From Orbicella franksi (Eukaryota), in assembly GCA_964199315.1 (NCBI GenBank), contig OZ116703.1, forward strand, positions 3,844,001 to 3,908,000: a DNA stretch of 64,000 nucleotides. Reading direction: 5' to 3'. Shown here piece after piece: positions 13,204 through 34,900 of this stretch (within the stretch, counting starts at the first letter, position 1; each line of letters begins with the position of its first letter). Position numbers and translations under genes: made by a program. The notes beneath the pieces are model-generated. The model was not told the origin of the DNA. It ran no database searches and saw nothing but the letters and a program-made list of their open reading frames with translations.

Positions 13204-13459
13204 TTTGATTACTTGGCCCAATCGAAAAAGACTGGAACTTGAACCTTTGGCAGCGACCGCTGTTCCGGTTCGCATCTGAGGTCACGAAGCAGTTTCGTCG
13301 CGTTCCGTCACGATGGGTCACGACAAAAACATACCCTTGTGTTTTGGCTGATTTTGGCTGGTTTTGGCTCAATTTCAAGGACAATGATCCGAACTAGGAG
13401 GGGAACCTTGTGTTTTTTGGAAACCTCTGTTACGTTCGTCGTTGTGTGAAGCAATAGCT
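13204..13459. promoter_or_regulatory. Probable bidirectional promoter and 5' UTRs shared by GALK2 and the myotubularin gene
   Basis: Divergent ATGs at 13203 (minus) and 13460 (plus) are 256 bp apart. CpG-rich relative to flanks, three GTCACG motifs, three tandem TTTTGGCT units at ~13340-13369. Confidence 0.7.
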
Positions 13460-16400
13460 ATGTTTTATGTCCCAAGTGGTACCCCAAGCACGGGTAGCAG
13501 TGACAGTGGAGATGGCGCCCCCATCGCGAGCGCTTCCAGAAACCTTGCTAGCCTGTTGGACGAGCAGCGGAAGAGAGGGATCGGTGCTGCTTTACTTACA
13601 ATCACAGGTGCGAGTTCTATATGAATACTCTTAAAGACTTGCTAAGGTTCTGGGGACCTAACATTCCTCTTCTCAAACTACGAGAACTGAAGCTTTTAGC
13701 TTCTTGTTGAAGCGTTCTTCAGCACAGTGTTTATGGCGATGGGCGTTAAATAGTCATGGTTATCTTTATGGTGATGGTTAGAATTATCAAGTTGCGTCAC
13801 CTAAATGACGTTCTGTTTTCTTTCAAAAGAAGACACTTTTTCACCCACTGTTTGGAAAATAATGACGTTTTGTTTCCACAATGACACTTTAGAGTCAGAA
13901 TTCTATTGAATGTTTAGCCATCTGACAACAATACACTTTTAATTTACGTTTTTATACTTGCATAATAGAAAATACTTCTCGTAAGGACATATACGGTGCT
14001 GTGTTGACACCTCTGCATTTTTGTGTGTTGTTGTAACCATTTTTAGCCCTATATTCAAACTTACATGGCACATCCATCATGTGTGTAATTGATACTTACA
14101 ATTATTAAGCTTATTTTGAAATAAGTGGCCATTGGTATGAGGAATTTTTTTTTTTAACTTGATGGGTTATTATTTAAATTCTTGGTTGAATTTTACAATG
14201 CCTGGCAACTCTGAAAACATCACTTCAATTTGTGACACCATTAATATTGTCTACAGTCCAACAGTCAATGTCAATAAAAAACACAAGTGTATCATGGCAT
14301 TTTCAAATTATCCATCCCAGTGAAGGTTTGCATCCCATTTTTTCATGGTTAGATCTTAAGAATGATAATTGTAATGAGAATGAAATTGAAAGTTGGTAAC
14401 TCAATAATCCCACAATTACAGAGAATGAAACCACATAGCTATTTAAAAGAAAAAAAAAAACAAACAAACAGCACAAATTCCTCTCCACTGGGCTGAGGAA
14501 CGCAGTGGCAGGCAGTCTCAAACTTGTTCTTATTCATCCAATATCGGGGACCATGGGCCATGGTAGCAGGAAACTCATTCTTATTCATGCATTACGAGAC
14601 TATGGACCATTTTGTAGACTCAGTGTTACCAGTATTGTATCAATTTTGTTCCCAATTCTTCCTTTAATAATTTTGGCTATTCAGGACCTATATTCTGAAC
14701 AAACTGATTTTTTCCTGTATTGATATTTTCTTCCTTGCATTAATGAATGCTAACAGTTGTTTTATTTTAAGATACATGTAACTCTGGATATAAAAATAGG
14801 CCACGTTTGACACATCAATATTCTAAGATGGCTCCGAGGCTTTCAGGACAAACCTCTATATTTGGTGTTGTTTTCTTTGTATCCAAGTTTCTTTTGGGAA
14901 TTGAGGGAGATAAAAGAAACTTTAAAAAATTACAATTTTGACCCCAATGCCTCTGCGCCATGTATGAATATTGATATATCAAATGTGGCCTATTGATACT
15001 GTAGAGGTTGCCAAATTACAGAATGGTAAAAGTGTTTCATATGATATACATGTATGATTTAGCCTTTGAAGCACAAAGTGAAGTCTATTACAAGCAGGAT
15101 TCATGAAAGTAGGATAACATCACCTGTGATGAGGCCCTGTTAGGGGGGGGTAGCCATGTCCCCTGTCTGAAATTCGCCATCAGCCATGTCAGCATTTCGC
15201 AAGATTCCTATGTCACCTGTTGGAATTTTGTCTCAGAGGAGTTGTGTTGGGAAATTTGACCTTGTTCAATTAAAATGAAGCTACACCTATAACACATTGT
15301 AATACCTTTGTTTATTAAAAAAAACGGACACAGTGCTCTCAAGTCTCACACAGTGAGCATGAGGCTCACGCAAAGGAATTCAATCTTGCGCTCTCACGCT
15401 GAAACTATTTCTCATGCATTGAAGGTTCCTTGCTGTTTTAGTCAAGTACATATATAGCTAAGTATCTCTTTGGATATAATTTATTCCTTGTATGTTTTGC
15501 ACTTGCTTCGAACACTTTTCAGCAGTAGAATTCTTATGCAGAGCGAGGATTTCTCTGGTCAGTGGGTTTAATGATTACTTGATGGTTACTTTTAAAGCAT
15601 TACATTTTGACTCAGAATGAAGGAAAAGACTTCTTAGCTACTTCAATTTTTCAAAATTTTGTAAGGGGCTGGGGCATGCTGGGGGGCATATTGGGGGCAT
15701 GCTTTCTAAGGGCTTGGGCATACTTTTGAGGGCTCAAGTTGCTAACCTCCTAGGGGATGTGGGGGTATGGTCCCCCAGGAAATTTTGAAATTTAGACGCT
15801 TGGAATTACTATTTTCAGCCATTTTCCAGTCAGTATTTGGACTTAAAGTACAATCGAACCTATAACTATTTTTACCATGTTTATGTTTAACAACCGTTCT
15901 TTAACTCAAAATCTCAACGGCCTCAATCAGATAATCTCTCCTATCTATAATCTTCCTTTGAATTTGGTATAACCCTTATCTGCTGCTGAAGATGAGAAGA
16001 CCTTGGCAGCTTTCCCCTGTCTCTCTTTTCCTTCCGTAATGCCATTTGTTGATAATACAACTCCATATTCTTTTACTGGTGACCCACTAATAAAAGTATG
16101 AAGCAGACGGTTGAATATCTCTTTCCTTTTTCCTTAAGCGTGCTTTTAGGCGTTTCAGGGCACTGCTCACTCAGCTGAGAGTGAGAAAAAATATTCGGCA
16201 ATGATGGACTCGATTTATTTGACGTGGACGTTTCAGCATATATAAGAAAGCCTGGGTTTCACGACCCGTCGACATTGCTCGTGAGAGAGGAAAACACATT
16301 TAAAACTCTGGAAATGCATCTTCACTTTGACTCAGATGTTTAAAACAATCACTGCATTCTCAGTTCCGAAATTCGTTGTCGTTCTATCTTGCCATTGGTA

Positions 16401-19400
16401 TCGCTTTCTCAATTTTGCTGGAGTAGGCTGTTGTTTGTCGCCAATTCATAGCTCTCATGTCGCCGTTTCAAGGCCATGTCGCTTGTCAGAATTTACCCCT
16501 AACAGGGTCTCTGTGATGGACAAGTGTCCCATCCAGAGAAGGTACCATTAGCTGCAATTTTCCAAGCCATATCCTGATACTGCAGAATTTAACTGTTACC
16601 AGCACCAATCAATGATCAGATTCCTCATAACCCTAAGCCTGCAAATACAGCCATGTAACACTCATTGCTCTTGAATAGTTTAGACATATTCTGAGGTTGC
16701 TGATAAGACTTTGTTTTTTTGGAAAGAGAGAAGGAAAGGGAGAAGCGTCTCAAAATAGGGAGGTGTGTGTGTGTGTGTGTGGGGGGGGGGGGTTATTATT
16801 TCAGGTTATAATTCACCTTACCTATAGAAAAGCAACTTTGTTAGAGAGTACTGGTACTTGCTAACAAGTATGGCTTGTGCTGCAGTTGTTGAAGGGCGAA
16901 ACCTCCCTGTCATGGATTCAACAGGCAAGTCTGATCCATACTGTGTAGTGATTGTCGGAAATCAAGAACAGCGCACTGTTGTACAGTATAGCACTGTCTG
17001 CCCAACTTGGCATGAGACATTGCAGTTTGAAGTCAGTGGTGTGCCCCAACTGATGCAGAATGAACCTGGTAAATTATGACAATCTTTCTTTATAACTGTG
17101 CTTATTATTTGGTTACAATGTCGGTGAATGCACACTGTGGTAGTTAGTCCTCTAGCTTAAAAGCACAATGCTTGGAACCCAGCCAGTCTTGCTCCTGGTC
17201 TTCCCAGGGGATCCGTAATCCAACATACAGTATCAGCCAAGAGTGAGTTGGTAGTCATTGAAAATGACTGGACTTGCTAGGCAGTCCCCAAGTATCTTGA
17301 AACTGCTACTTGGAAACTGGAAACTCAAACTTTGAAACTCATTACAATTCTCAATTCTTGATAACATGCAGTATCAAAGAATAATAAATTTATTTTCAAG
17401 TTAAGGCTGTCAACTTACATTTGACCGGTACTATATCAACTAATGGTAACCACCAGGCCTGTAATCCGTACACGATTGTATCAAGTGTATTTACTATGTG
17501 TTCTAGACATGTTGTTTAAAATTAATATATGATTTATGTTATTTGCCAGCCAGGAGGTCTGTATTGGGAAAAACTATAACCGAGGTCTCGAGTACAGCTC
17601 TAGGCCACAGGCCAAGGGCTGTACTCAAGACTGAGCTACACAGTTTCTCCCAATACAGACTGACCAAGGCCAGCAAATAACATGTTTGATTTTGAATTTA
17701 ATTGAAGCTGTTCAGTTCAAATCTGGTGTACGAGTGTGTTTGACAAAAAGTGATTATTGCACTGTTTCCCTCACTCTGTCTTGAATGTTTACATTTTATG
17801 TTGTTTATGGTGTGACAAAAGGCTTGTCTTGAAACTTAGATGCCAAAGTTGGAAATTTCAGAACGGTCTATACTTGGGGTCTGGATGCGAATATCCAGAC
17901 CGCTGGAGTGCACGATTAGCCAATCAGATTCAATTATTTAGGATTTCAGATCGCTAAGAAGCTGAAGAAAAAAATAAATGTAATTATTATTTGTGTTATT
18001 TTTTTTAGTTGAGAATGCAATCAGCTGCTGCCTTCAGCACTATATACAGATTGATGTGTGGGATTATGACACACTGAATCGTGACGACTTCATGGGACGA
18101 GTTCAAATCCCACTCTCTCTCCTGTCAGAAGAAACCACTGCTCGTTGGTATCCCCTGGGAAGGGGATCAGCTAAAGACAATGTACATGGTGAAATCTTTT
18201 TGGAATTAACCCTAACGGCCTCACAGGTACAAATTAAAGTTAGTGTCTGTAGTACTAGTGGACAGCTGTTCCATCCTACCTGTAACTCATCTGTATTGCA
18301 CAAGCCAGTCTCAAGTATAGTGTAGAATGGAACAGCTGCCTACAGCTAGACTTGTGGGCACATGACTGTATTTTCTTGTCTGAAGTAAATACCTTTAGCT
18401 AAGTACATGTATGGAGCTTTTCCACTCATGTGGCAAGCAGCCATGCATATTTATTGCTCAGAACAAAAGATAGTGTTTACAGAAGAAAATAATTCAACTC
18501 CCAAAGTATTGGTTTGGGACGCCAACATGGCCACCTTTTTATTGTTTGGAGACACCAATATGGCTACGGTTATGTCATGTGAAAACACTCTATAGTAGTC
18601 TGGCGTCACCATGCATTTTAGATCAAATTTGTTCCTTGCTTTTGTAAGTCCTTTCTTTAAATATTGTTTCTCTACACCAGTGTCTGTTAGTCAAAGGTAG
18701 ACAATGCTTGGTTAAGAAGCAGGAATAGGATGTTTTCTTATATGTTTGTTGCAATCATTGTTTCCTTTTTAGCCTGTACCAAAATGGTGTGTAGACTATG
18801 AGCTGTATTCTCTTTGCAAGAAGAAACCTGGATTTGAGATCCCAGTTGCATTTGGAGATTCTGTGGTTGATTTGCCAGGTAGGGCAGCTTACCGTCAATA
18901 ATACATGTACAGTGTACCTGTTCTAGAAGTAGCATTAGGGTCCACAAATTTTAAGACAGTCACTATAATCTGTATTATTGTCTTTTGGTGACATTTTCCA
19001 AAATAACAGTACTTAAGTTCAAATGAGGCTTGAAACTACTGTAAAATTTAGAGTCCAAATCCAAGCTTTTGCCAATCGATGGCATCATCAGGGTGTATTG
19101 TTACTGTATGACAGTCACTACATGTTTGCATTTCTTTTAGGCGAGGCCGAAAGAGTAGAGATGGTGATTGATGATGTGGTAGTTGAAGTCAGTAAACACA
19201 GAGGTATTGGGAGAATGTACCTCACAAATTTTAGGTAAACAGCAACTTGAACTTTCTGTTATTTTCAGTAAAAAACTTAGATAAAGTTTAAAACATGTGT
19301 AATAATACAATGGGGAGCTTGAGAAACCATGACAGCGACGCCAAGGACAACGTCAATTAAAAAATAAGTTAATATTTTACCTACAAATCTCGCGGTACCC

Positions 19401-22400
19401 TAAAGTAATTTACTTTGTTTGTCACTGTCAAAGCTATCTTGCAACTGAATCTAGAACATGGCGATGAATTTGATATTAAAAATTAAAAAATTAGCAGTCG
19501 TCATTCATGTTCTCCAGACAGTGCAGAACTTGGTCATTTAATGTTGTTGTTTTGCAGAGGACGGCAAAGAAATGTACCAAGAACTATAACGCACATGCAC
19601 GGCCATTGTTATCCTCATTAAACCTTTTGTTTAGTGACGTTGCTGTTGGTTCTTAAGCTCCCCAATAAGACGCTCTCATGCTAGATAATTTTGCTATCTT
19701 CTCTATTACCTTGTGATAACAAAAAAGTATTATTTGCAAATCTGATTGTTTGTCTTTAGACTTGTCATTCTCTGTCACCTATCAGGTCTTACAGCAGCAG
19801 GCTATGCATATGTGAGTACCAAGCATTGAATTTACAGTATTGCGAGTCAATGTTTTTAATGAGAAAAATCATTTCATAATAAATGCAAGAGACTCAAGAG
19901 AGTGCAATAGCCTTGTTAAGGAAAACTCAAAGTTTGGATAAATCCAAGACAAATAGCAACTGAGAAGGGCACTGCATAGGTGTTGGTGAACAAGTCCTCT
20001 CTATTGTGTACAGAATTGTGTGAAAACATGAAATTAATATTTTACAAACTGTATTTAACCATGAGAAATACCCATTTATTTGGGAAGTGCTTCATATGAG
20101 AAAGTTGCTTTGTAGAGTATTGATTCTAGAATTATAGTGAAAAGATTTTGTCAAAATTTCTGTTTCCAAAAGTCTCTAGGTCACCCTCAAAACAACGTTC
20201 TAACATCAATTATTGTCTAATGATGACAATACAAGGCTACTTATATGTAAATCCTCCCTATCAAATTGAACATCAGTTGCTGGTAATAAACAACGCTTAA
20301 CGTTAATGTTTTGTATGAGTTTTTACATTCATTTCTACTACAGGATATGTCCATGTCAGTTGCACTCAACAATATTCAGTCAGTTGACAGAGGAGAAGAT
20401 GAAAAAGTAAGGTCCTACATTAAGAGATCTTTGAAAAAAAAGAAACAGGAAAAAATTTATTATGGCAGGGTCAAACTACCTCTCGTTTTGGAGTTGTTTT
20501 GCCTTAGGGGTGAAAGTGAATTTGCACCATGCCCACAGAACTAGCTTCTGGTACCTTTTAGGGGTTCTTTGATTTCCCCTGTCACATTTATGCGAGAGAA
20601 TTCCCCTGGCCACACCCCTGGGGCATGAACTGGCTGAACGAAGCTGACTAAGTTTAGACTGGCATCCTTACACGTGTATCCTGATGCAGAAACAACAAAC
20701 TAATTTTTTTTTTTGAAAACCACATTATAAGTGCATCTCAACATACATCGTATTTTCAAATTGTATGTCCTTCATTTTCTTGTAAACTCTAGGTTGTCTC
20801 CAGGACTGCAAGAGGCAATGCTGGCTTCTCTGATGTGAAGACTCTGACGGTGCGTTGTTGGGACTTCCGCACAATCCGCTTGATCTTCATGAACAAGCCT
20901 CAATATTTGCACAGCTTCTATATGCCACCTGATCCTGGGAGCATGCAGTCCAGTCCAGATTCCATTCTTGCTTCTCTGCAACCTGGCAGTCAGGATGGTA
21001 CAAAGGAACCAAGTCTGCAGTCAATAGGTTCTGAGGGGGATGGGGGTGAAGGTGAGTTTGTCAGAACTTTATCTGTGTAACGATAGTAGTTACTCGGCAT
21101 AACAAAATGTTATTGTCTATTTGTGCCTTTTACAGGAAGACAGCCTCTAAGCCAACCCCAGGTAACAGACCCTCCCTCTGCAAATGACTCCACAGATAAC
21201 ATCACACGTCAGAGCAGCTGCAGTAGTTTCCAGATTTTATCACGCAGCAGCAGCAGTAGCAGCGTTGCAGGTGTGAGCTCACACGGGTCAGATGGCCCCC
21301 AGCTTGTTCCCCAGGGTACTTCAGGAGTCCTTGGGGCAGGATTACTGGCTGCTTCATTTGGTGGAGGAGTGCCAATAAACAATGCCGTTGAGAGACTAAA
21401 GACTGAGCTGATACCAGCATCCATGTTAGTATTAGAATCAGTTATGGTTTTTTTGCTTACCATAATAGGGTCAGTCAGTGTGGGAGGGGGGGGGGGGCAT
21501 GTTGGATTTTGGTAGGCTTTTGTATTCAAACTACAGTTGGTTAAGGGGAAAACAATACTTCACTTAAAGTCAGTGTAAAATTATAATTTATTGTTAATTA
21601 ATCTTGTTATCAGTGACTGTTTGGTTAATTATGGGCTCTCATCTTTGGTGTAAGAAATTTCACTTTAATGCAACCAACTTCAATTTGTGTATTTTAAACT
21701 TAGAAAATGTCCTTTTGTTAAAAATTTGTTATGTTCTTCTTTCAGATTTTTGAATTTATACATCGGTGTGTTTTATCAGAGATTGGAATTCCTGGCCATG
21801 AATGCTGTTGATAATCCTCCATCTGTACACTTTGTAAGGTAAGTGATCGTTTGCTTCTCATAATTTCACACATGTCCAATAATTTTGCCCTTGGCTTCTT
21901 ATGCTTCGGGCTGCATGCATGCCAGATGTGGGCTTCTGTTACGTTAGGATCATTTGATATCGTTAACTTGAGATTGTTTCGTTTTGCTCAGAGCGTTGCC
22001 AAAGGACACTGAACTAAGTGGATGGAGTGTGTATGATTTTCATGAAGAGTTTGCCAGGCAACAGGTGATTTGGTGCAAAACAAAGTCATATTATAACAGA
22101 GTTTAATATAAATCTGCTAATGATCTATCACAAATGCTGTTCGTTTTGCCTTAACTACACAACCAAACGCACTCAAAGGTTGAGGCATTGTTCAGCCAAG
22201 CCCAAGATATGTTTTATTTGAGTCAATAAGCTTACAAAAAAGTGGATTACAAGAGATACATCAAACAGCATCCTACATGCGCCAAAGCCGGAGACATAAA
22301 CCCCAAAAACTTCTTATTAGGAAAAATAGGGACCGTGTACCCCCGACCAAATGCAGTGGCACCACCTTTGGGTTTTTAAGGTTGATATATAAATAACAGA

Positions 22401-24582
22401 ACGGAAGATAAATCAGATAATGTTATTTACACAATAAATATAAAACTTATGCGAAAGTGCTATTGGCAAGGCTGACCGTAGAATGTCACAAGTTTCTCAA
22501 CTGTCTCTTTATACAAATGTACTAACTTGTGTTAGCCTTCGCGTACTACTCTCGCTCCCAGTTCCCTGTTCCATGTGGGCAAAAGATTAATTTATGTCAA
22601 TACCGATTATCACAAATGATATTATCATGAGTGCCGTTCTCTAATCAGCTATGCTACTCACTATTTATTCTGTTTGAGATAGTGAGTGTGTGGTTCTTAA
22701 CAAAACAGTGGCCGCTTCTTCGTGTTTTCGAACTGTCTGTGAAGAGGATTTAGATAACGTGTAAATGAATAGTAGATTTGTAGTTACTGTAACAAAATTA
22801 CTGGATTTCTCTCGATTTCTATAAATGATAGATAGTTGACTCGGGCTGCACCCTTATCACCTATCGCTCATTAGAAATCTCGAGTTCATAGTCTAATTGT
22901 TTAATTAACAGTCACGGAAGACTATTCACGTTTTCTTTGGTCACAGTCCTTTCCAAGAGAATCGACTATTCCGGCCTGGAACATTTTTAACCGAGGGACA
23001 CACAGTGGCCACCTGGTTTGTTGTTTGTGTTTTGTACGTGTATGTCGTTCATGGGCAAGAAGACACTTTGCTCTCACAGTGCCCCTCTCAAGCAGGTGTA
23101 TTAATGATGGTAATAGGACTGATTGGAGTCCAGTTCGGTCTGTAATCATACGAGTGATCAACAAAATCGGACGACCGTGAAGCGGGAGTCCGATTTGTTA
23201 ATTTTCTGTCGCGTACGCAAATAGAGAGGCTGTGAACAATCTTTTTATATCATAGAGCTCCATAATCCCTGTTTTTGTTCCAGGTTTCTGACAAGTGGCG
23301 TGTGAGTATGATCAACCAGGCATTTCTTCTTTGTAGTTCCTACCCTCCACTGTTTTATGTTCCTGCTGAAATACAGGTAACAGTTCATTAGCGATATTTA
23401 AAAACTGAAAACAAAATAATCCTAGAACCAAAATCCTTGTTATAAAGTAGTCAAACTTTCAAAGGGAAAAGTGCATCGTAGTTCTGGAAAAATGGCATCT
23501 GCAATTAATGTAACCTTGATGGGCCCTTAGTTTTACACGTCATTAGCAGTTTTTAGGATTTTTTTTAATCGGTTGAGAGGGTATTCAGTGTATCCATTGC
23601 TAAGCTAATAACTTTTTTACAACAGAAAATGAAAACTTCGTCATGAGTGGCTCAGTACTATTCCATGTATCTCATCAAGCATTAATCAGAGCAGTGTTTG
23701 AAAATCGCAACAAATTTACAAGTGTCCAAAAAGTGGTTTTCGTGTCTGCAGTTGACTGAATTTCCGCTGATAAGCTGGAACATGTAAGAAGTTGAGAACT
23801 AGCGTTTGACTAGAGTTGCTATCGGTCAGTGCTCTCTTGTTTAAGGTAGTATCATTTCGTTTAAGGCCACATCCTGTGTTTACTAACTGTCTTGTATAAT
23901 GTCTACAGGACTCTACTTTAAAAGAGTGTGCTGCATTTAGAAGCAAGGTTAGTTGGTATTTTTGTTGATCGGGTGGTACATAGACGGATTCGTCCAACTT
24001 GTCTACATCCTTATTGCCACCGAATTCAGACCATGTGATGTTACAATTGTTCTGTTTGTACATACTCCCATGCAATCAGCTACGTGTGGCAAATTTCACA
24101 TTTGTAACCTCCCATGAATCATCAGGTGGTCTTAACTGGGTGATAAAAAGGATACAAGCACGTTTAATAGCCGAATCCATCTATTCTTTGATCGACTCCC
24201 TTTAAGTCCTTTACTTATGTCGATTCACCGCTTTCAGTGTTGCTTTCCTGTTTTCCAATGTTGTCTCCCTGTTTGTAAGTGGTGGCCCAATGCCAATGTT
24301 GGACCAATGTTGTCCCACTGCTTTCTGCCCTGCTTGCTTCTCTGTAACACTACGGATTTTCTTTACTGAAATCCTCCGCGCGAAGGACTGAATCAAAATT
24401 ATGCAAATTAGGGAAAGATCGCTCGGCATACGCTAGGAAAAAAAAGAGAGACAGTTCGCAGATTACTTTCCTGTTTACCAATGATCTGTCAATGCTTATC
24501 AGTAAGGCCCCACTTGTTCGAAGGCTGGATAAAAATCGCTATCCAGGGGATAAGTGTTAGCACAACAAACCGCGCTATCCGC

Positions 24583-24619
<37 letters not shown>

Positions 24620-27600
24620 TTTTGAAAAACGCGGGCCTGGTGAATTATTGTTTGTCAATAATATGGCGCAAGGCTTGCTTAATATGGTGTTTATGGTGTT
24701 ACAGGGTCGTCTTCCAGTCTTGTGCTGGTACAATGTCAAGAAAGAAAATTTCATCATGCGTTGTGCACAGCCAAAGACTGGTCCTGCTTTCAAGGTGAGT
24801 AGTACGTGTTTATTTGTGGTGTTCTTTTACAGGATTTTTCACCGACAGATTTTAAAAGCTGCATGAAAGAAATTTTCTTCATGTCTTATTGTCCATAAAA
24901 TTGATGGATCAGTCCATACGTGAAGTTCTGAGCAGAAAACATCAATACACACACCTAAAAAGAAGCAAAAATTACATTTGCCTTTAGTTATTAGCTACTG
25001 CGATGATTGGTAACGCAGCAACAACATTTCTTTCCTTAGAAAATGCACGCCGGGCTGCTGTTTGTTTAAGTTTTGACTGTTTTGCTTTATTCGTCATTTT
25101 TTATCCCTCTTCGGTGCACTAGAAATGTCAGTAGAACACTAACAGTCGGTCTGTGAACGTCCTCTTGTCTCTGCGTCCTCTTCATTAGTATGTTTTTCTG
25201 TTTACAGTGGACATCATCAATGTTTAAACAACATGTAGGTTGCACTGTTAGCAATGTCCTCATTAAACTATTGTAAGTAGCCCAGACAAGCAGGATATTA
25301 ACCCTTTGAATACCAAACTTTCGCCAAAAAATACCGTTTTTAACCGTTTAGTCAGGTTTTTTAGCTGCCATGACGCTAAATAAGTCTAAGTTTTGCTAAA
25401 AAAGCTTTTGTTTTACTAAAAGGAGAGATTTTTCGAGGATTAGGCACAAAATTGAGCAAAACTTCAATTCCGGGCATGAGCATAAGCCAATTTTTTTTTT
25501 TTTTTTTTTGCCATTAACCGTTCTCAATTTCGTTTGTTGGCCCTTTCCTTTCTGTTTTTCTCGGCCCTTTTACACTGGCTACCTTTTGCATTGTATGTTC
25601 TTTCTGGCTGCAGTGAAAAGTTGGATGTTAATTATGGGCGAAGCCTAGAAATGGACCTTGATCAATCATAGGCGTTGTGGACCATTTTACCACCGTTTTT
25701 GCACCAAAACTGATGATGTTGTTTTTCGATTTGCGACGTCGGAATGTCGTCGATATCTAAACCTGACCATTGTGCGGAAAGGGCTAGCCTAGCACTACTA
25801 TCTGCTTATCAAGAATATCTGATGACATTTAAATTGATGACGTCACGAGTGGTACAAAGAGTACGACCATTAATTACGCATATATGCGTAGTTGGTATTC
25901 AAAGGGTTAAGTAAACTGCCTACATACAAGTACATTCAAAAACTCATAACATTAAGAGCTATTCTCTGTATACTCGACCGAAGTGTTGGATTGTTTTCTG
26001 TGCCAGTGTAAATGTATATTTGCTTTGTTTTTCAGTCTGTGTGGTTTGTTCATTTTCAGAACTCTGTCGACGACGAATTTGTCATTAGCACTGCTAGGAA
26101 GTGTAATAAATGTACAGACAAGCTTGTTATTTTTGATGCAAGATCCATGTTTGCAGCAGGAGGAAATATGCTTAAGGTGCGTTACACCCTGTGATCTAGT
26201 TTGAGACTTTTTTTTCTAACTTCGTCTTCTTTGGTCCCTTCTCAGAAATGTTTCTCTCGAAGCGTTTCAAAGTGGTTTTCAGGGAGTCTCTTTCTTGCAA
26301 ACTCTACAAAATGCCTCCTGTTGTTTAGTTTCCAAACTTCTAAGCCGATCACAGATCCGACGGTCGTCTAGGCTTGATTTCCGCTCAATCTCCGCCGTTC
26401 TTTCGGGTCCGGTCGCATTTCTCCCCGAAAAGACACGGCTGTGAGTTCGGGGGAACAGCGTGGGCTCCTTTCCCGAACAGCGGCTAGTAATCGAGTCTAA
26501 CGGTCGTGCAGTTGATCGGCATATGTTTAAATTTGAAGCAGGGGATTGTAAAGTTTCTTGGGGGAATTGTTGTTTTGAGGGGTGTTTGCAATTAGAAAGG
26601 GAGGGAAAAGATTGTGTCCATTTCACCGTGTTGACCCTCGACTCCTACCAATTTTTTTTTTCTTTCAAATTTTGGAACACATCTCACAAGTTCATTGTCA
26701 ACGGGTGCCAATGTAGATGTAGAAAAACATGAACAGTTTTACTCGCTATAAAAACTTGATTCAACGTTCTAGCTGATGTCGAATTGGATGATCTCTTTCG
26801 TTTGTGGTCTTGTCGTTACAGGGCAAGGGAACAGAGGACACTATAAACCGTTACCAAGGTTGCCAGCTGTTGTTTCTCGATATTCCAAATATTCACGCTG
26901 TACGGGACAGCTTGTACAGACTGCAGGGCGTCTGTGAATCTTCAGCGCAGAAGAAATGGCTGTCACATCTAGAGTCGACCCAGTGGCTTGCGTACATCAC
27001 ATCTATCCTAAAGGTACCGTAATATCTTCATCCACTCAGGATCTTAAATTTCAGTAGGTGTTAGGAGCAGTGGTCCAACGATCGATACATTTCTATCCCC
27101 GATTCAAGCCCTGGCCGGGGTCATTGTGTTGTGTTCTTGAGCAAGACACTTTACTCTCACCACTCTCTCCACCCCTGAATGGTTACAGGGAAACTCGTAT
27201 TAATTAGGGCAACCTGACAGAAAGCTGGACAAGCATCCCATCTAGGGGGAATTGCAATACTCCTAGCCGCTTCACGGGGGAGATATGCGCCAGTGCGTTA
27301 TGTGTTATGCGTTATCCGTTATTATGTTATATGTGTGTGTATTTGCGCCATCGTCATTCTAATTATCACCTTCATTATACAGACGTCATCATGACGTTGT
27401 CAAGACATCTTCATTGTTTTTATTTTCGTGTTTGTTGGTTCCAGGGCGCTGTGACGATTGCTCGGTTTGTTGATAAAGGTGCCGCTGCCCTGGTGCACTG
27501 CAGTGACGGCTGGGATCGAACGTCACAGCTGACGTCACTAGTTCAGCTGCTGCTGGACCCGTTTTATAGAACGATAACAGGATTACAGGTAAATAACGCT

Positions 27601-30600
27601 AGGATCACATGCAAGTAACACTTATAGTGCATTTATATTCTGACGATAAACTGATATTAGGTGGAAAACATAATGATAACAGTTACTTTTACATAACATC
27701 TTCGCTGTTTAATTAAATTGTCACTCACAGCTATTTGCCACAGAACCAGGCGGACGCAAATCTTGATAATTTTTATTTTGTTGTAATCATTTCGTTAGGT
27801 TCTCATAGAAAAAGAGTGGATATCATTTGGTCATCGTTTCCGCGACAGACTGGGCCATCTGTCTTGTCCCAGTCAGCGGTCACCTGTGTTTTTACAGTTC
27901 TTGGACTGTGTGTGGCAGGTAAATTGATCAAACGTTCGGTTGTCATAACTGGCGCGACGTACTTTACTAATTGGACTGAAGCTATCTCCTTGATGGCCAA
28001 TCAGGAGGATAAACAAACCGGACATTACTTGGTTTACCTAATTTTTCCCGCGCTTGGCACCAGTGCACGTTTGCCGCTCCAAGTTTTTCCCGCGCTTTGC
28101 ACCGGGTGCATGTAGTTCCGTGCTTGGGACCAAATAAATGCTTTCTCAAGTTATTATAACAGCCCTTAAATTTTGCTCAGCTTGTCTCGTAGTCTGTTGA
28201 CACTATGGCTCTTTGACAGTGTCATTCTGTATTCTCTCTTTTTTCTCTTCTAATTAATTCATTTTTTTTCCACCTTCCAGATTGTACAACAGTTCCCTAG
28301 CGCTTTTGAATTTACTCCAGTATATTTAGTTAGAATAGCAGAACAAGTTAATTCGCAATGGTAAGTTGTTCTGTTTTTGTTTTTTAAATTAATTCTTTCC
28401 TTCCTCTCTTCCTCCTTCTCTCCCTCCTTCCCTTCCCCATTTGCTATCTACCTGTCTCCTCTCATTACGCAAATTGTGCGAGCTCTCGCGCAGTTCTGAA
28501 CTTTTTCCGTCACCGTGATGTCAATTTACGTCATATTATATTGTTGTTAGGCAACGTCTGACAAATACTGCAGGCTCGATCTGAATCTGTATATTTTATG
28601 TCTTTTGAACAAAGTGTCTCTCCGTTGCAGGTTTGGAAACTTTCTTTGTAATAACGTGAACGAGAGACAAAAGCATTCGGTTCCAACTCTGACCGTATCA
28701 CTGTGGGCTCACTTGAAAGCAGATGAAGAAAGCTTCAGGAATCCAACCTACAGAAAGTACACAGAGGTAGGCGGGCTGGCCTTAATGAATTTACGGACAA
28801 GACAGCTGGAGTTTGGGACGGACTTAATTGTGTATATGTAAAAGAAGTTAAAACCTGTTGTTTCCCATACCCTCTCCTTGGTACCCCTGTCCTTTTCCGG
28901 GAAAGGGGTTAGGGTACATTCTAGGTGATGCTAAGCTTTGTGTCAGAAGGTATTCAAGTCAAGTCAAGTTTATTGTGTATATACACTAAGCTTTTGTGAG
29001 GACAATCTCACCCGCTAGTTTGCAGGTATAACACAGAAAGTAAAATAAAAGAACTAAATTGAGACAATACCTTCAACAAATAACTAAGATAATACCAGGG
29101 ACGAGATATAACTTTTCATAAAAATGCGAGGGAAACCGTTCCTTTGTACTCTGTGCTGTAGGAGAAGCTGGCTCCATACTTGTTGTAGGTTATTTTAATC
29201 CTATAGCTCATCCCTTAAAACTTGTTTGTCTCTCCTGACTTTACAGACGTTATTTCCCGTGTCAAACCCAAGAAGGCTTCAGTTGTGGGTGGATTACTTC
29301 TTAAGATTCGACGAGACTGCTTGGTCAACTCAGGACTCCACCATTCAGGACGATGACGGCGATGCGGAGGTAAGTTGAGGGGGAAAGGAGAGGTGGGTGT
29401 CAAGATGTTTTCAATCGCACTAACTGTTGTTGTGGTGTTTGGTGTTTTCAGCCGGTGGTTACCAAGCCGCTGGATTCAGTTATTTGGGTCCCGGATGATA
29501 GAGCGCGGGAATGCGCGGACTGCAAACAGAGATTCACACAATTCAGAAGAAAGGTATTAAGGTCAACTTTCAAATTCTAATTACTGGACTCCATATATTT
29601 CTTATAAGATTATAAAATTTTTAGAATTTGACTACAGTGCGACTTCTCGAACCGAGCCACTTGGAAAAGAGTTCATGGTCAATCAACGTTACTAAAGAAC
29701 AAAGGATAGCGATCTTTTTCTGAAATAAACCAATAACATTGAAAAATACGAACAATAGTTCTTAACAAAATTGAAAATCTCTCAGTGTTGCGAACCTCTC
29801 AGGAAACTTTGCTTTTTGTTGCTTGGTTAGTTCGATCCTAAATTTTGTACGCTTTTCAACGGTTTTGTTTAGTTGTCGCAAAATTAGTTTTCAAGCTAAA
29901 TCTTTCGAGCGAGATTTATAATCATGATAATTCGCCTTCAAGGACTGAATCTCTAAGAGTGTATATGACGCAGAGGAGTCGATAGTGTTTATGTTTTCGC
30001 GTCAAACACACCGTTACTTGTTCTCGTCCACTGTACTCAGTATAAGTCTTCATTGGTTAGTTTTCTTCTAAGTGGCCTTATTCGAGTCGTCACACTGTAA
30101 TGTGTCCAGTAAATCCCTGCTGGTCCTGTTTTGAACCTTTAACTACCGTTGGTTCTGCCTGTAGTGCAAACGTTCCTCAGTAACTTTTTCCGAGTTCAAT
30201 ATTATGTGAGCTGTTGTGCGTCATTTTGTGACTTGGTCGTGTTAATGAGTGTAGGGGAGGGGAGGGTAAGCAGTGACAAACGCGAGGACTGCTACTTTGC
30301 GTGTGTTACTTTGCTATCAACATGTTTTGATTTTGAAAAGACACCTTGGGCGCGAGTCTGATAACTTAGGCCCAGTTCAGACGCCGAACTTTTCGTGAGC
30401 CGAACATAATTCGAATTTGGACCGACCCAAATTATCAAAAGTACTCCTGTTGATTCAGACGTCGAACTTAATTCACCGAACTAAATTTAGTTTGAACCAA
30501 AACACTGCGAAACATCAGCGATTTTCAGGCAAGGTGTATGCATTAGGTTCGGCACATGAAAAGTTCGACGTCTGAATCAAATCCGTTCGAAAGCCGAAAT

Positions 30601-31162
30601 TCCCGGCTGAGCTAGGCGGAAAGAACGGCTGAGCCGTTCCAAATTCAAATAGCCGTTTTTAACTGATTCAGACGCCTAACTTTTCATGTACTTAATTCAA
30701 CGTATTAGGTTCGGCTCATGAAAAGTTCGGCGTCTGAACTGGGCCTTAGTTGCGATGGCCTGATGATAATTCTGCTAACAAACTGGTTTTATTTTTTTTA
30801 CTTTCCTGATGTGATTTCCGCTGGACAGCATCATTGTAGGTGAGGAAATGTTACTTCGTACAAATACTGTTATTGTTCTTACCAATGAGGAAATTTCTTT
30901 TCTTTTTTTTTTTTTTTTTGCCTTTTCGTCCAAATTTTTCCGTTGATTCTTCATCCTATGTATTCGCTTTGATCTAAATAGACTCTTGTCGAATAATAAT
31001 TCTTGTATTTTCAGAGCGTGTGGTCAAGTGTTCTGCAGTGAATGTTCAAAACAGAGAATCCCTCTTCCTCAGTTTGGTTACATGAACCCTGAAAGAGTGT
31101 GCGAGAACTGCTTTCAACACAACAGCATCAGACAAGTCGACGAAGAGGTCAGTTACTGCTAA
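13460..31162 (+). CDS. Myotubularin-related phosphoinositide 3-phosphatase with N-terminal C2 domain, PH-GRAM domain and C-terminal FYVE finger, 24 exons, ~990 aa
   Basis: Exons: 13460-13607, 16886-17068, 18009-18226, 18773-18878, 19141-19234, 19760-19811, 20344-20406, 20793-21051, 21136-21424, 21746-21838, 21992-22064, 23284-23376, 23909-23947, 24705-24794, 26060-26176, 26822-27013, 27445-27588, 27799-27918, 28281-28360, 28631-28766, 29247-29369, 29452-29553, 30829-30839, 31015-31162. All GT-AG and in phase, 2973 nt. C2: [22 protein letters not shown]...[20 protein letters not shown]: [10 protein letters not shown]...LTVRCWDFR. Phosphatase: [88 protein letters not shown]: WVPD...CADC...[17 protein letters not shown]...RVCENC. 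Possible alternative last exon 32009-32056. Confidence 0.93.
14795..14994. mobile_element. MITE (~200 bp)
   Basis: TIR AATAGGCCACGTTTGACACATCAATATTC / GAATATTGATATATCAAATGTGGCCTATT. Termini resemble the 2100-2259 element. Confidence 0.75.
15132..16510. mobile_element. Non-autonomous DNA transposon, 1.38 kb, 8-bp TSD
   Basis: TIR AGGCCCTGTTAGGGG / CCCCTAACAGGGTCT (1 mismatch). Direct repeat CTGTGATG at 15124-15131 and 16511-16518. Repeated subterminal CATGTC motifs at both ends. Confidence 0.75.
16765..16792. repeat. (GT)n microsatellite followed by poly-G
   Basis: gtgtgtgtgtgtgtgtgtggggggggggg read directly from the sequence. Confidence 0.9.
17536..17683. mobile_element. Foldback MITE (~150 bp)
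   Basis: TIR ATGTTATTTGC / GCAAATAACAT, with internal inverted pairs GTCTGTATTGGGA / TCCCAATACAGAC and GAGTACAGC / GCTGTACTC. Confidence 0.7.
19312..19663. mobile_element. MITE with AAT target-site duplication
   Basis: TIR GGGGAGCTTGAGAA / TTCTTAAGCTCCCC. AAT at 19309-19311 and 19664-19666. Confidence 0.75.
24505..24640. mobile_element. Short MITE with iterated CTATCC/GGATAG motifs
   Basis: AGGCCCCACTTGTTCGAAGG ... CCTTTTGAAAAACGCGGGCCTG termini and several internal GCTATCC / GGATAG inverted units. Confidence 0.6.
25302..25906. mobile_element. Non-autonomous piggyBac-like element (605 bp)
   Basis: Perfect 15-bp TIR CCCTTTGAATACCAA / TTGGTATTCAAAGGG. TTAA at 25298-25301 and 25907-25910. Subterminal palindrome TACGCATATATGCGTA. 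No transposase ORF. Confidence 0.85.
26368..26496. mobile_element. Short MITE-like repeat (second copy at 31328-31398)
   Basis: Both loci begin CTAGGCT(T/C)GATTTCCGC and end GAACAGC..GGCT(A/G)GTAATCGAG(T/C)CT. Confidence 0.6.
27063..27273 (+). mobile_element. tRNA-derived SINE, degraded copy (further fragment at ~23040-23105)
   Basis: CCCTGGCCGGGGTCATTGTGTTGTGTTCTTGAGCAAGACACTTTACTCTCAC...AATACTCCTAGCCGCTTCA matches the 40741 copy. Confidence 0.75.
30369..30745. mobile_element. PIF/Harbinger-type MITE, TTA TSD
   Basis: TIR GGCCCAGTTCAGACGCCGAACTTTTC / GAAAAGTTCGGCGTCTGAACTGGGCC. TTA at 30366-30368 and 30746-30748. Related copy at 50765-51170. Confidence 0.9.
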
Positions 31163-31740
31163 CAAATGTGGCTATCTTGACGGCTACAACGCAGTCGTTT
31201 GCTAGCTTGCTTGCTTGTTTGTTTGTTTGTTTGTTGTCTTTGTGTTTTTGTTTGTTTGTTTGTTATATATAGTCTTCAAGAATGTACCAGACATCAGTCC
31301 CGGGAAGGGGAGCACTCCCATGTCCCCCTAGGCTCGATTTCCGCCGCTCACTTAAGTTATGCCTACGATGCCGAACAGCGCGGCTGGTAATCGAGCCTGA
31401 ATTAGTCTCCAATAGGAGAGAATAATTCTGGTCGTGGCTTGAGCTCCGTTGGACCCTTCAACCAAGAACACAACAGACAAATAAGCGTTATAGTGACTTA
31501 ATAATGATAAAAGCGTTGTCATCGAATGAGATCATCGCCGATTTAAACTCCCAACACACTGTGACGGTGTGAAATGTACCTTGGGTAAACATGGCTTGGG
31601 TAAACATGGCTTTCTGTCCCCAACACCTTAATCCGTAATTTAGACCCCTAACAGACATCGATCATTTACCTCACGTGGGACCTCCCTGCCACCCGGGGAG
31701 AGAGAAGTAGTAGAAAATATGGCCAGTTGGGTTGTTCGCC

Positions 31741-31968
31741 CTTAGCTACGTCACGGGTTGCACCTTTTGAAAAGTTTCCCCTAAATTTTTCAAGTTCGTC
31801 GTTTGCAATCCGTGTTAATCTTTTCCATCCTTAACCATCCTTGTTCCTTTATGGTTGATTATTATCTTTCTGGTGTTTTTCTATCTTAGTAAACTACTAT
31901 TTTCAGGTTTCCCTCAATTCAAAGGTAATTTTGCACATGGCCAAGATACCGTGACTGAACTCCTTTAA
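31741..31968. mobile_element. TTAA-associated (Kolobok-like) MITE; inverted copy at 38671-38913
   Basis: Ends AGCTACGTCACGG ... CCGTGACTGAACTCCTTTAA. The internal sequence is the reverse complement of 38671-38913. Confidence 0.7.
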
Positions 31969-34900
31969 GACAAGTAAAAATGCACGTCTTCATTGTTGTT
32001 TTCTTTAGGACGAAGATGAGTTTGAAGTGATCACGCTCCCGACTTTTTCAATGTAATGTTGAATTAAGGCGAAGACATTTTGCTCAAACAACGCTCCTGC
32101 AATAACCAAGATATTTCAAGGAAAGTATTCAACGCTTGTGCTACTGGCTGGAGAAGGCGAACAATCTTGACAAAAGAAAAAGTTCGAACAAGAAATGTTA
32201 TCATACAGCTTGGATTTGTCGGTGAAAGGTGTTCTTTAGTGGTTGCCAGTTATTTACCCGTGAAAAAGTTCCTCGTGGAACAATTTGCGTGGTCATGTAA
32301 GCAAAATTCTATGCTTTTACCAGAAAGGCTTGTGCAATTATTTTTAACAATGATAAATATACCGCGCGGTTTGATTAGTGTAAAGAAACATTGAATGGTT
32401 TTCTATTTTTGAGTTATTTTTTAAACGAAACAGAGTAAACCTTTGAACATTTTATCCGCGTTTCTTAAAGTAGAGATACGGTAACGAAAGTTTGGTAGAG
32501 CTGGAATCATCAGATAATGGAGTAATCACTCGTAGTATTTCGGTAGTTGTACGAGTCGCTCGCTATTTTGGCGTTAAAAATGACTTGTAGAAATGTGCAG
32601 CGATGCTAGCTATGCGCTAAAATGTTTTTCCTTAAAACAAACTTTAACTTCTAACCGTAACGCTACTTTGCTTAGTTCCTGGATCTTGATATTTCGTCTC
32701 GGTCAATCTTTCTCGGATCACGTGGTCCGGCCGTATGTCTCGGATACGTCACCGAAATCAATTGACCGTGAAGGCCTGGGAGAAGGCCGTACAGGAACTA
32801 GCCAAGTAGTCACTTATAGCTTGTCACGCACTCCTCAGGAAAGATTGCGTGACGAGCCTGAAGAGAGTCTGCGTAAGAGGAAAACTACAAGGACTGCAAC
32901 TGACCTGTTAAACCGGTTTCCAAGGGTACAAATATCGTGAGAAATTTGTACTCTGGAGAGTGGAGTTGGTTTATGATCCTTGTTCCCCCAAACCTCCACG
33001 TGTGTTGCTGTAACTCTATAAACGCACGAAAATTACGTTTTATTTCTCAGATGTAAAGTATTTATAAAATGTACCATTATTAAAGTGTGTAGAATTGTAA
33101 AATTTATTGTAAATGTATGATAGGAATATGTTTATTAGGGTTTGAATTAATTAAATCATGTACAGCATAAAATGTGTATGCGTTATTTTTTTGTTTTCCT
33201 TGTAGATCAGTGTACTATAACTGCTCGGTTGTTGTGTAGAGAGAAGACAAAGCAATGTTGCAAGAGCAATTTTTGCTTTATAGCTGGCTCGGCGAGTGGC
33301 CAAGATGAAGTACTTTCTGATACAAGAGCGGGCAAGAACAGATACATCTGATCCATCTTGCCTGCTCGGGTTACCTGATGCCCGTGCGCTAGACGCTGCT
33401 GGTCTTAACACGGGCCAAACAGTGCACAAAGGAACTTTATTCAAATGCACTAAGTCTTTTCAAGTATGTGAAAATTAAATAATCCCACTGGAAAAAAACA
33501 CTGAACCTCCAAGGTCTAAGATTCTTCAGGTAGTTCGTTGTCTTCCTAAGCTAAATAACAAGTCCTTAATTGAAGTTCCTTCTAGTGTTTTTTCGCGTGT
33601 AATCACAACAGTAGCTTGCCCTTACGCTTAGTCAACAACCCATATCTTCTCTCAATCATTCAATTTTAGGTGCTTCATATGGTTTTAAAAAAAGTTGCTA
33701 TGGAACATCTCTCTAAAGAAGTTATTTAGACAAACCAGACAGACCAAACTGGGTTTTTTCTGTCGTTTTTCCTTAGACTGAAACCTCTTAAATTTAATTG
33801 AGTAGCAACTTTACCACCTTTAAACCGGAAACACCAAAACCTTTTAGAATGGTGTATTAGATATTTATCTATATATTTTTTAAGTTGAGACAATAGGGGT
33901 TCTCTTTGGAATGGCGCCATAGATCATTCCGTGACACTTACTTGACGTGGGCTCCGCCTAAGGAACAAGAAAGCTCTCGATTTTGCTTCCCAGGTGAAGG
34001 AAGTCGTAAGCTGACGAAGCACGTACGAGTCATTAAAACACACAGGAACTTTATCTGTGTAACTAGAGTATTGCATTAGAAGTGCGAATATGGAAATTGT
34101 TCACACATTTGGAAAGAGTTCGAAAATGGTAATTTGTGGCACAAATTACCATTTTCCAACACGTACGGGGTTGGAGGAGGTTCACATAATTGAATAAAGT
34201 GCCTGGACTTGTGCTACAGACCTTTAAATTATGTCAACCTTTATTTCTTTTCTTTTATTTCCTCTTTTCTTTCCTATTTGACACTGGTGAAATAACGCTA
34301 ATGTCGATGAATGCGTGACTCGTAGGGAAAAGAGCATGTCTGTTTCATCCTAATGCACGCACGCGGTCAGGACCTACCGGCTAAACGACACTCGGTAACG
34401 GCAATCTTTAAAAACTTAGTTATTCGATCAAATACGATCAGTCGCCGAAAATTCTCCTTGATATACTTCACATGAACTTAATTAATGTCAAGGACTGAGT
34501 ACGCGACATAAAAAAAATATCCCTTCAAAGTGTAGGGCTTTGGAACATCTCGTGAAATTTTCGGAAGCTGTCGAGACTGAGAAAAAAACTGGATTAAGAT
34601 TTGGTTTTACAGACTTCTTTACAGACTTCCTTATCGTTTAACTCCAATTTTTTTGACACACGGTGGTTTTAAGAGTCACCTTTAGACGGTTTAACTTCGG
34701 CTATTTTATTGAAATTTATTATTTCCGAATTGGTTTCTGGAGCAAACCGTTAATATGTTCAAAACAGATAACAATAAAACACGTGCGGCGGCTGGAAAAA
34801 ACGTGCGACACAGTGAACAGCTGTGAATTTCGGTGACAATCTCCTGAAATTATCCGGTGAAATGTATGAGAAAGTGACAAACTGCTGATTAGTTGTTCTG

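Follow-up and report, generated by a model that had tools for sequence, protein, structure and literature searches.

Myotubularins are human disease genes whose products set endosome and autophagosome identity, and a locus in the stony coral Orbicella franksi raises the question of whether a C2 domain, a PH-GRAM domain, an active phosphatase (PTP) domain, and a complete FYVE finger are joined in one myotubularin chain and, if so, what kind of protein this is. The locus lies in a 64,000-nucleotide stretch of contig OZ116703.1 (assembly GCA_964199315.1, positions 3,844,001 to 3,908,000, forward strand), the whole of which is referred to here as the window; its sequence is found in coral RNA and DNA runs, with a stony coral as the source. 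A first-pass annotation, made from the sequence alone, had joined these four modules in a 24-exon open reading frame (ORF) and proposed a lineage-restricted phosphatase as a candidate undescribed system. The four-module chain is borne out by Pfam matches, by profile and fold matches for the PH-GRAM domain, and by RNA joints, and the locus is very probably the Orbicella ortholog of an ancient C2-bearing myotubularin "new clade," with the targeting mechanism proposed below. The finding is the correct annotation of a real gene in a known, little-studied subfamily.

The gene spans window positions 13460 to 32056 on the forward strand and has 25 coding exons, with GT..AG ends on all 24 introns. The spliced coding sequence is an open 3,006 nt and codes for a product of 1,001 amino acids (aa) that is 99.4% identical (6 of 1,001 residues differ) to an Orbicella faveolata RefSeq model of the same length (LOC110061862; P0034 below). 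The 66-aa C2 exon, used as a library query, retrieves P0034 among results that are dominated by multi-C2 proteins and include a few C2-only fragments (P0038, P0042, and P0163). The exon map was built by placing the P0034 peptides on the window, where stop-free forward-strand pieces between 13460 and 31162 translate into recognisable domain fragments. The layout is C2 (residues 44 to 181), PH-GRAM (184 to 322), a Ser-rich linker, the active PTP domain, the FYVE finger, and an acidic tail, distributed over the exons as follows.

Exon 1, 13460..13607, forward: ATG and aa 1-49 (MFYVPSG...), ending in the first C2 strand (LLTIT); RNA joint 13607/16886.
Exon 2, 16886..17068, forward: aa 50-110, first half of C2 with loop-1 Asp60 and Asp66; Pfam C2 E 4e-14, RNA joints on both sides.
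Exon 3, 18009..18226, forward: aa 111-183, second half of C2 with loop-3 Asp129/131/136/137; Pfam C2 E 5e-8, RNA joints 17068/18009 and 18226/18773.
Exon 4, 18773..18878, forward: aa 184-218, start of PH-GRAM; tied to the C2 exon by RNA contigs and raw reads, with AlphaFold2 (AF2) and hhalign support.
Exon 5, 19141..19234, forward: aa 219-249, PH-GRAM core (PGEAERVE...GRMYLTNFR); RNA joint 18878/19141, hhalign to M1 PH-GRAM.
Exon 6, 19760..19811, forward: aa 250-267, PH-GRAM; peptide identical to P0034, GT-AG.
Exon 7, 20344..20406, forward: aa 268-288, PH-GRAM; P0034 peptide mapping, GT-AG.
Exon 8, 20793..21051, forward: aa 289-374, end of PH-GRAM and start of the Ser/Gly/Pro-rich linker; P0034 mapping, GT-AG.
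Exon 9, 21136..21424, forward: aa 375-470, low-complexity linker; P0034 mapping, GT-AG.
Exon 10, 21746..21838, forward: aa 471-501, end of linker; P0034 mapping, GT-AG.
Exon 11, 21992..22064, forward: aa 502-526, start of the myotubularin phosphatase domain; Pfam on P0034, P0034 mapping, GT-AG.
Exon 12, 23284..23376, forward: aa 527-557, phosphatase domain; P0034 mapping, GT-AG.
Exon 13, 23909..23947, forward: aa 558-570, phosphatase domain; P0034 mapping, GT-AG.
Exon 14, 24705..24794, forward: aa 571-600, phosphatase domain; P0034 mapping, GT-AG.
Exon 15, 26060..26176, forward: aa 601-639, phosphatase domain; P0034 mapping, GT-AG.
Exon 16, 26822..27013, forward: aa 640-703, phosphatase domain; Pfam Myotub-related E 5e-15.
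Exon 17, 27445..27588, forward: aa 704-751, catalytic loop with Cys722; Pfam E 8e-19.
Exon 18, 27799..27918, forward: aa 752-791, phosphatase domain; Pfam E 2e-17.
Exon 19, 28281..28360, forward: aa 792-817, phosphatase domain; P0034 mapping, GT-AG.
Exon 20, 28631..28766, forward: aa 818-863, phosphatase domain; P0034 mapping, GT-AG.
Exon 21, 29247..29369, forward: aa 864-904, end of the phosphatase domain; MTMR2 alignment reaches residue 888.
Exon 22, 29452..29553, forward: aa 905-938, N-terminal part of FYVE (WVPD, CADC, ...RRK); Pfam FYVE E 4e-4.
Exon 23, 30829..30839, forward: 11-nt micro-exon, HHC of R(R/K)HHCR; AG/GT flanks.
Exon 24, 31015..31147, forward: aa 942-986, C-terminal part of FYVE (RACGQVFC...RVCENC); Pfam FYVE E 1e-10, donor GT at 31148.
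Exon 25, 32009..32056, forward: acidic tail DEDEFEVITLPTFSM and stop, with LIR-like EDEFEVI at aa 988-994; matches the P0034 C terminus exactly.

RNA reads and contigs were placed on positions 13450 to 19449. One contig (X12 record 1, 1,846 nt) runs through 13450-13607, 16886-17068, 18009-18226, 18773-18878, and 19141 onward; the parts it skips all have GT..AG ends, and its loose end past 19234 continues into exon 6. A contig from a second polyA run with a different organism label (X14 record 10) has identical joints at 13607/16886, 17068/18009, 18226/18773, and 18878/19141, the last three being those that the first-pass annotation had singled out for checking, and three raw polyA reads cross 18226/18773, the C2-to-GRAM junction. 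In another coral, an RNA-run contig of 4,900 nt (L008) carries an intronless, uninterrupted ORF for a 1,007-aa C2-Myotub-FYVE protein. These joints, the raw reads, and the intronless ORF establish that the C2 and the phosphatase belong to one gene with one spliced, expressed mRNA. The join between exons 1 and 2 keeps the phase and makes the first C2 strand whole (LLTIT/VVEGRNL).

The start at ATG 13460 has an in-frame stop upstream (13385-13387), and ortholog starts read MFY(V/I)PS. X12 record 1 reaches 256 nt upstream of 13450, and X14 record 6 (1,697 nt), which stops exactly at the exon 1 donor, reaches 1,539 nt upstream of it; this extension means a long or spliced 5' untranslated region (UTR) or an overlap with an upstream transcript, and because of the in-frame stop, ATG 13460 stays the start if the UTR is collinear. 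Within intron 1, stretches 14650-15250 and 15850-16650 have RNA contig depths of several hundred to more than 3,000 in two polyA runs, with many loose ends, far above the depth of about 13 to 170 on exons, and most likely reflect transcription of repeats or of pieces of transposons outside the gene. At the other end, the exons of the 24-exon ORF stand, but its stop does not: exon 24 there reads through the donor at 31148 to a stop at 31160-31162, whereas the conserved form splices 31147/32009 into exon 25. The 25-exon form is taken here as the probable main isoform because the tail is kept in transcript-derived orthologs. The micro-exon at 30829-30839 is required for RKHHCRACG, as found in P0034 and in transcript-derived orthologs; it codes for HHC at the centre of the FYVE lipid-binding motif, and skipping it would shift the frame and disrupt the finger.

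The C2 domain is matched by Pfam both on translated pieces of the window (16828-17076, E 4e-14; 17984-18322, E 5e-8) and on P0034 (residues 46 to 160, E 8e-24). Structure models were made from P0034, which differs from the window product at the 6 residues counted above, and the AF2 model of residues 1 to 335 (predicted local distance difference test [pLDDT] 74.5, predicted template modelling score [pTM] 0.71) contains a confident C2 sandwich, whose best fold match is the calcium-bound C2B domain of Munc13-1 (template modelling score by target, 0.84). In an alignment of 20 sequences ranging from coral to Capsaspora, D60, D66, D129, D131, and D136 never vary, with conservation of at least 90% at D137, and these positions align with the aspartates of the LPxxDxxGxSDPY and DxDxxxxxD motifs of synaptotagmin-3 C2A, which are the calcium ligands in synaptotagmin and protein kinase C C2 domains. 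This conservation of five predicted calcium-ligand aspartates from coral to Capsaspora is newly noted here.

The PH-GRAM domain is more divergent: Pfam GRAM has no match on P0034, and a phmmer search against the PDB aligns from residue 508 onward only. However, a profile of residues 184 to 335 from 20 clade members matches an M1-group PH-GRAM profile with an hhalign probability of 95.6% (E 1e-8), aligning the GRxYLTNFRL core and the C-x-DFR strand. The AF2 model of the same segment (pLDDT 75.6) is beta-rich and PH-like, and its best solved matches are the Vps36 GLUE domain, BBS5, and the PH-GRAM domains of MTMR2, MTMR6, and MTMR1. Profile comparison and fold search thus place a PH-GRAM domain ahead of the phosphatase, as in active members of the myotubularin family. 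The two are joined by about 170 residues of Ser/Gly/Pro-rich linker, whose length differs from ortholog to ortholog. When the two-domain N-terminal model is searched with Foldseek against the PDB and AlphaFold clusters, the only matches are C2 proteins and plant-type C2-GRAM proteins, and an ESM Atlas search gives a weak plant C2-GRAM lead (score 0.78).

Myotub-related matches cover 26792-27019, 27208-27615 (with HCSDGWDR), and 27799-27924 of the window and residues 507 to 831 of P0034 (PF06602, E 3.6e-124), and the domain aligns with the MTMR2 structure 1zsq (E 9e-114). The CX5R catalytic loop is intact (CSDGWDR within aa 720-729, Cys722, in the exon at 27445-27588), and because of this intact myotubularin active site the protein is most likely a 3-phosphatase for phosphatidylinositol 3-phosphate (PI3P) and PI(3,5)P2. 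FYVE matches lie at 29374-29577 and 30947-31159 and at residues 916 to 977 of P0034 (E 1.9e-21), and the predicted finger has the full PI3P-binding signature (WVPD, 916-919; RKHHCR, 937-942; RVC, 969-971) with the zinc-binding cysteines, and the signature is kept across the clade. The finger begins no more than about 15 residues after the phosphatase domain ends, which leaves no space between them for a coiled coil. Downstream of the finger, most members have an acidic run followed by F/Y-x-x-I/V, in the form DEDEFEVI in corals, EYEII and DYEII in hydrozoan-like sequences, and GYVVV, EYVVV, and GFLLV in sponges. The coral EDEFEVI (988-994) matches the LC3-interacting region (LIR) consensus of acidic residues and then W/F/Y-x-x-L/I/V, a short pattern, and this conserved C-terminal acidic LIR-like motif, newly noted here, is a lead.

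Relatives were sought with residues 184 to 835 as the query, and the results below concern the best 120 of 2,006 matches. The C2/Myotub/FYVE set among them comprises several scleractinians, Nematostella (LOC5520963), Actinia, Dendronephthya, Paramuricea, Clytia, Trichoplax sp. H2, the sponges Dysidea, Oopsacas, Corticium, and Ephydatia, Capsaspora, and EukProt and metagenome proteins; Trichoplax adhaerens TRIADDRAFT_51955 is also a relative, its model being without a FYVE in precomputed domains. The C2-myotubularin architecture is present in more than 20 species. All named C2-carrying proteins in this set are non-bilaterian, and vertebrate MTM1, MTMR1, and MTMR2 follow as the next best matches, with identities of about 47% and without a C2 domain in any of them, which is consistent with the earlier statement that human myotubularins have no N-terminal C2. 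The proposed lineage restriction therefore stands in that no bilaterian member is among these matches, but members of the family occur in Cnidaria, Placozoa, Porifera, and Filasterea. A third search, with a 12-species alignment, gave no new taxa, its index words seemingly coming mainly from the C2 region.

Maximum-likelihood analysis of the phosphatase domain over 47 rows splits the C2 clade from the M1 group with support of 99/96* and puts the window product and TRIADDRAFT_51955 in one clade. A EukProt protein of the same layout (P0221) is inside the C2 clade, and an MTMR2-like protein of Actinia falls on the M1 side. Clade members without a C2 are scattered and mostly short, which suggests that they are truncated models. 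The FYVE looks like part of the shared layout of the clade, since it is present in coral, Nematostella, Trichoplax sp. H2, sponges, and Capsaspora, and this too is newly noted here. A survey from 2010 grouped Tad51955 of Trichoplax and M01745983C of Monosiga, which have an N-terminal C2, in a "new clade" of myotubularins (posterior probability 0.998, bootstrap support 97.5%; Kerk & Moorhead 2010, PMC2927912). Given that report, into whose clade the coral gene falls, the RefSeq model, the wide taxonomic spread, and the grouping with TRIADDRAFT_51955, the system is neither undescribed nor specific to cnidarians. Literature searches on myotubularins with symbiosomes, an N-terminal C2, Capsaspora, or Trichoplax gave nothing past the 2010 survey.

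The coral genome (G000) has eight myotubularin loci, four active and four inactive as judged by an intact CSDGWDR loop or a degenerate one. The degenerate loci (L001 on C15, L003 on C6 at 0.87 Mb, L005 on C4, and L006 on C8, with loops such as CFEDGWDT, SYEDGIDR, and HGDAGTDA) are presumably dead-phosphatase partners. In two other active loci, L004 (C9:19406562-19414666) and L002 (C12:19767325-19773475), a FYVE exon follows about 3 kb downstream, and L007 is the coral M1 ortholog. When fragments of seven coral paralogs are added to the tree, the C2/FYVE clade still forms one side of a branch (100/99*) and contains none of the seven, and L007 groups with M1. Rooting this second tree on an inactive paralog puts the root inside vertebrate MTMR1, which is treated as a long-branch artefact, and only unrooted splits are used. 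L004 is nearest MTMR8/6, and the coral therefore seems to have an R6-type myotubularin with a FYVE; such a protein was reported for Nematostella in the 2010 study and suspected there of being a possible assembly error (PMC2927912).

These loci bear on the reading that the gene is a cnidarian MTMR3/MTMR4 (R3) ortholog that gained a C2 domain. The order of phosphatase and then FYVE is common to the coral protein and MTMR3/4, and the trees contain no authentic R3 sequence, but L002 and L004, the other two active FYVE-linked loci of the coral, do not fall within the C2 clade, the best-scoring named relatives belong to the M1 group, and the gap before the finger is short. In the 2010 study, moreover, Tad51955 is placed apart from the Trichoplax R3 member (0.998 posterior, 97.5% bootstrap; PMC2927912). 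An R3 origin is thus very unlikely.

A cnidarian innovation that steers the maturation of symbiont vacuoles, a role raised in the first-pass annotation, is in keeping with expression of the gene in coral holobiont RNA and with the general control of phagosome maturation by PI3P turnover. However, orthologs are found in sponges and in Nematostella, Trichoplax, and Capsaspora, which are non-symbiotic, so that the distribution gives this role no backing, and the occurrence of the family in non-symbiotic animals and in a unicellular relative speaks against an origin tied to symbiosis. No paper tying myotubularins to cnidarian symbiosomes was found in the literature searched. This reading is highly improbable, and any symbiosome role is speculation. 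The notion that the C2 exons are a separate upstream gene, with the fusion an artefact of reading frame or gene prediction, draws on the 3.3-kb intron 1 with its strongly transcribed repeats and on the C2-only database entries, but is practically dismissed by the single contig from exon 1 through the C2 to the PH-GRAM exons, the agreement of the second run and the raw reads, the other coral's C2-to-FYVE transcript, the in-phase C2 strand, and the recurrence of the architecture across species.

The preferred reading remains that of an Orbicella member of the C2-bearing clade. The proposed enzyme would remove the 3-phosphate from PI3P and PI(3,5)P2, like MTM1 and MTMR2, and its FYVE finger would recruit it to membranes of endosomes, phagosomes, or the autophagic pathway that carry PI3P, where the C2 domain may add calcium-dependent binding to acidic lipids. 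Together, C2 and FYVE would restrict activity to membranes on which PI3P and a calcium signal coincide, and the enzyme, by using up its own targeting lipid, would be self-limiting; as an inference from sequence, such a coincidence detector is reasonable. The C-terminal acidic F/Y-x-x-I/V motif may link the enzyme to ATG8-family proteins. Canonical myotubularins pair via a coiled coil, and because the 15-residue gap excludes a pairing coiled coil there, action without a dead-phosphatase partner is probable. A bolder version, possible but rather doubtful, is that the clade represents an ancestral holozoan calcium-gated PI3P phosphatase that would dock through FYVE and LIR on ATG8-decorated or PI3P-positive vacuoles and end PI3P signalling in phagosome or autophagosome maturation; it would have been lost in bilaterians, with its tasks spread over MTMR3/4/6/14, and possibly recruited to symbiont vacuoles in symbiotic cnidarians.

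Several points weigh against placing the gene in this clade with this mechanism. In the trees, coral paralogs stand in for human MTMR3/4 (R3) and R6 sequences, the "new clade" pair of 2010 is represented by its Trichoplax member, and separation from the R3 group depends on the coral FYVE-bearing paralogs and the published placement of Tad51955. The 3' junctions 29553/30829, 30839/31015, and 31147/32009 lie outside the read-checked interval. Some myotubularin FYVE fingers, including that of human MTMR3, bind PI3P poorly though they look intact. The proposed calcium dependence, binding to ATG8, and compartment of action are read from motifs, and the activity, lipid binding, and localisation of clade members are predictions.

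The discovery is modest, as the gene is already in public predictions and the C2 clade was first described in 2010. The subfamily shows that another, predicted active myotubularin with two extra membrane-targeting modules was present in early animals and in their unicellular relatives, one that the usual model organisms seem not to have retained. The Nematostella ortholog LOC5520963 makes the subfamily tractable, and its study could reveal a pre-bilaterian coupling of calcium signals to PI3P turnover and show whether PI3P removal matters for the fate of cnidarian phagosomes and symbiosomes.

Among known systems, the coral protein has the N-terminal C2, the PH-GRAM, and the active phosphatase in common with the "new clade" pair Tad51955 and M01745983C, but it also has a FYVE, whereas the available part of the 2010 study gives the C2 and not a FYVE for that pair (PMC2927912). 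The M1 group (MTM1, MTMR1, and MTMR2) has the nearest named phosphatase, with the same CSDGWDR loop and a PH-GRAM before the PTP, although in precomputed Pfam its members have neither C2 nor FYVE, they form a separate clade, and the coral protein adds the long PH-GRAM-to-PTP linker. M1 proteins have a coiled coil in their C-terminal part and a PDZ-binding end. The R3 group (MTMR3 and MTMR4) has an active phosphatase followed by a FYVE finger, as in the coral protein, but is without a C2 and has a long, coiled-coil-containing spacer before the finger in place of the short coral gap. The C2 fold and five-Asp site resemble those of Munc13-1 C2B and synaptotagmin C2A, and plant C2-GRAM proteins have the same C2-then-GRAM order, but all of these are without a phosphatase or a FYVE, and the likeness is one of single domains only.

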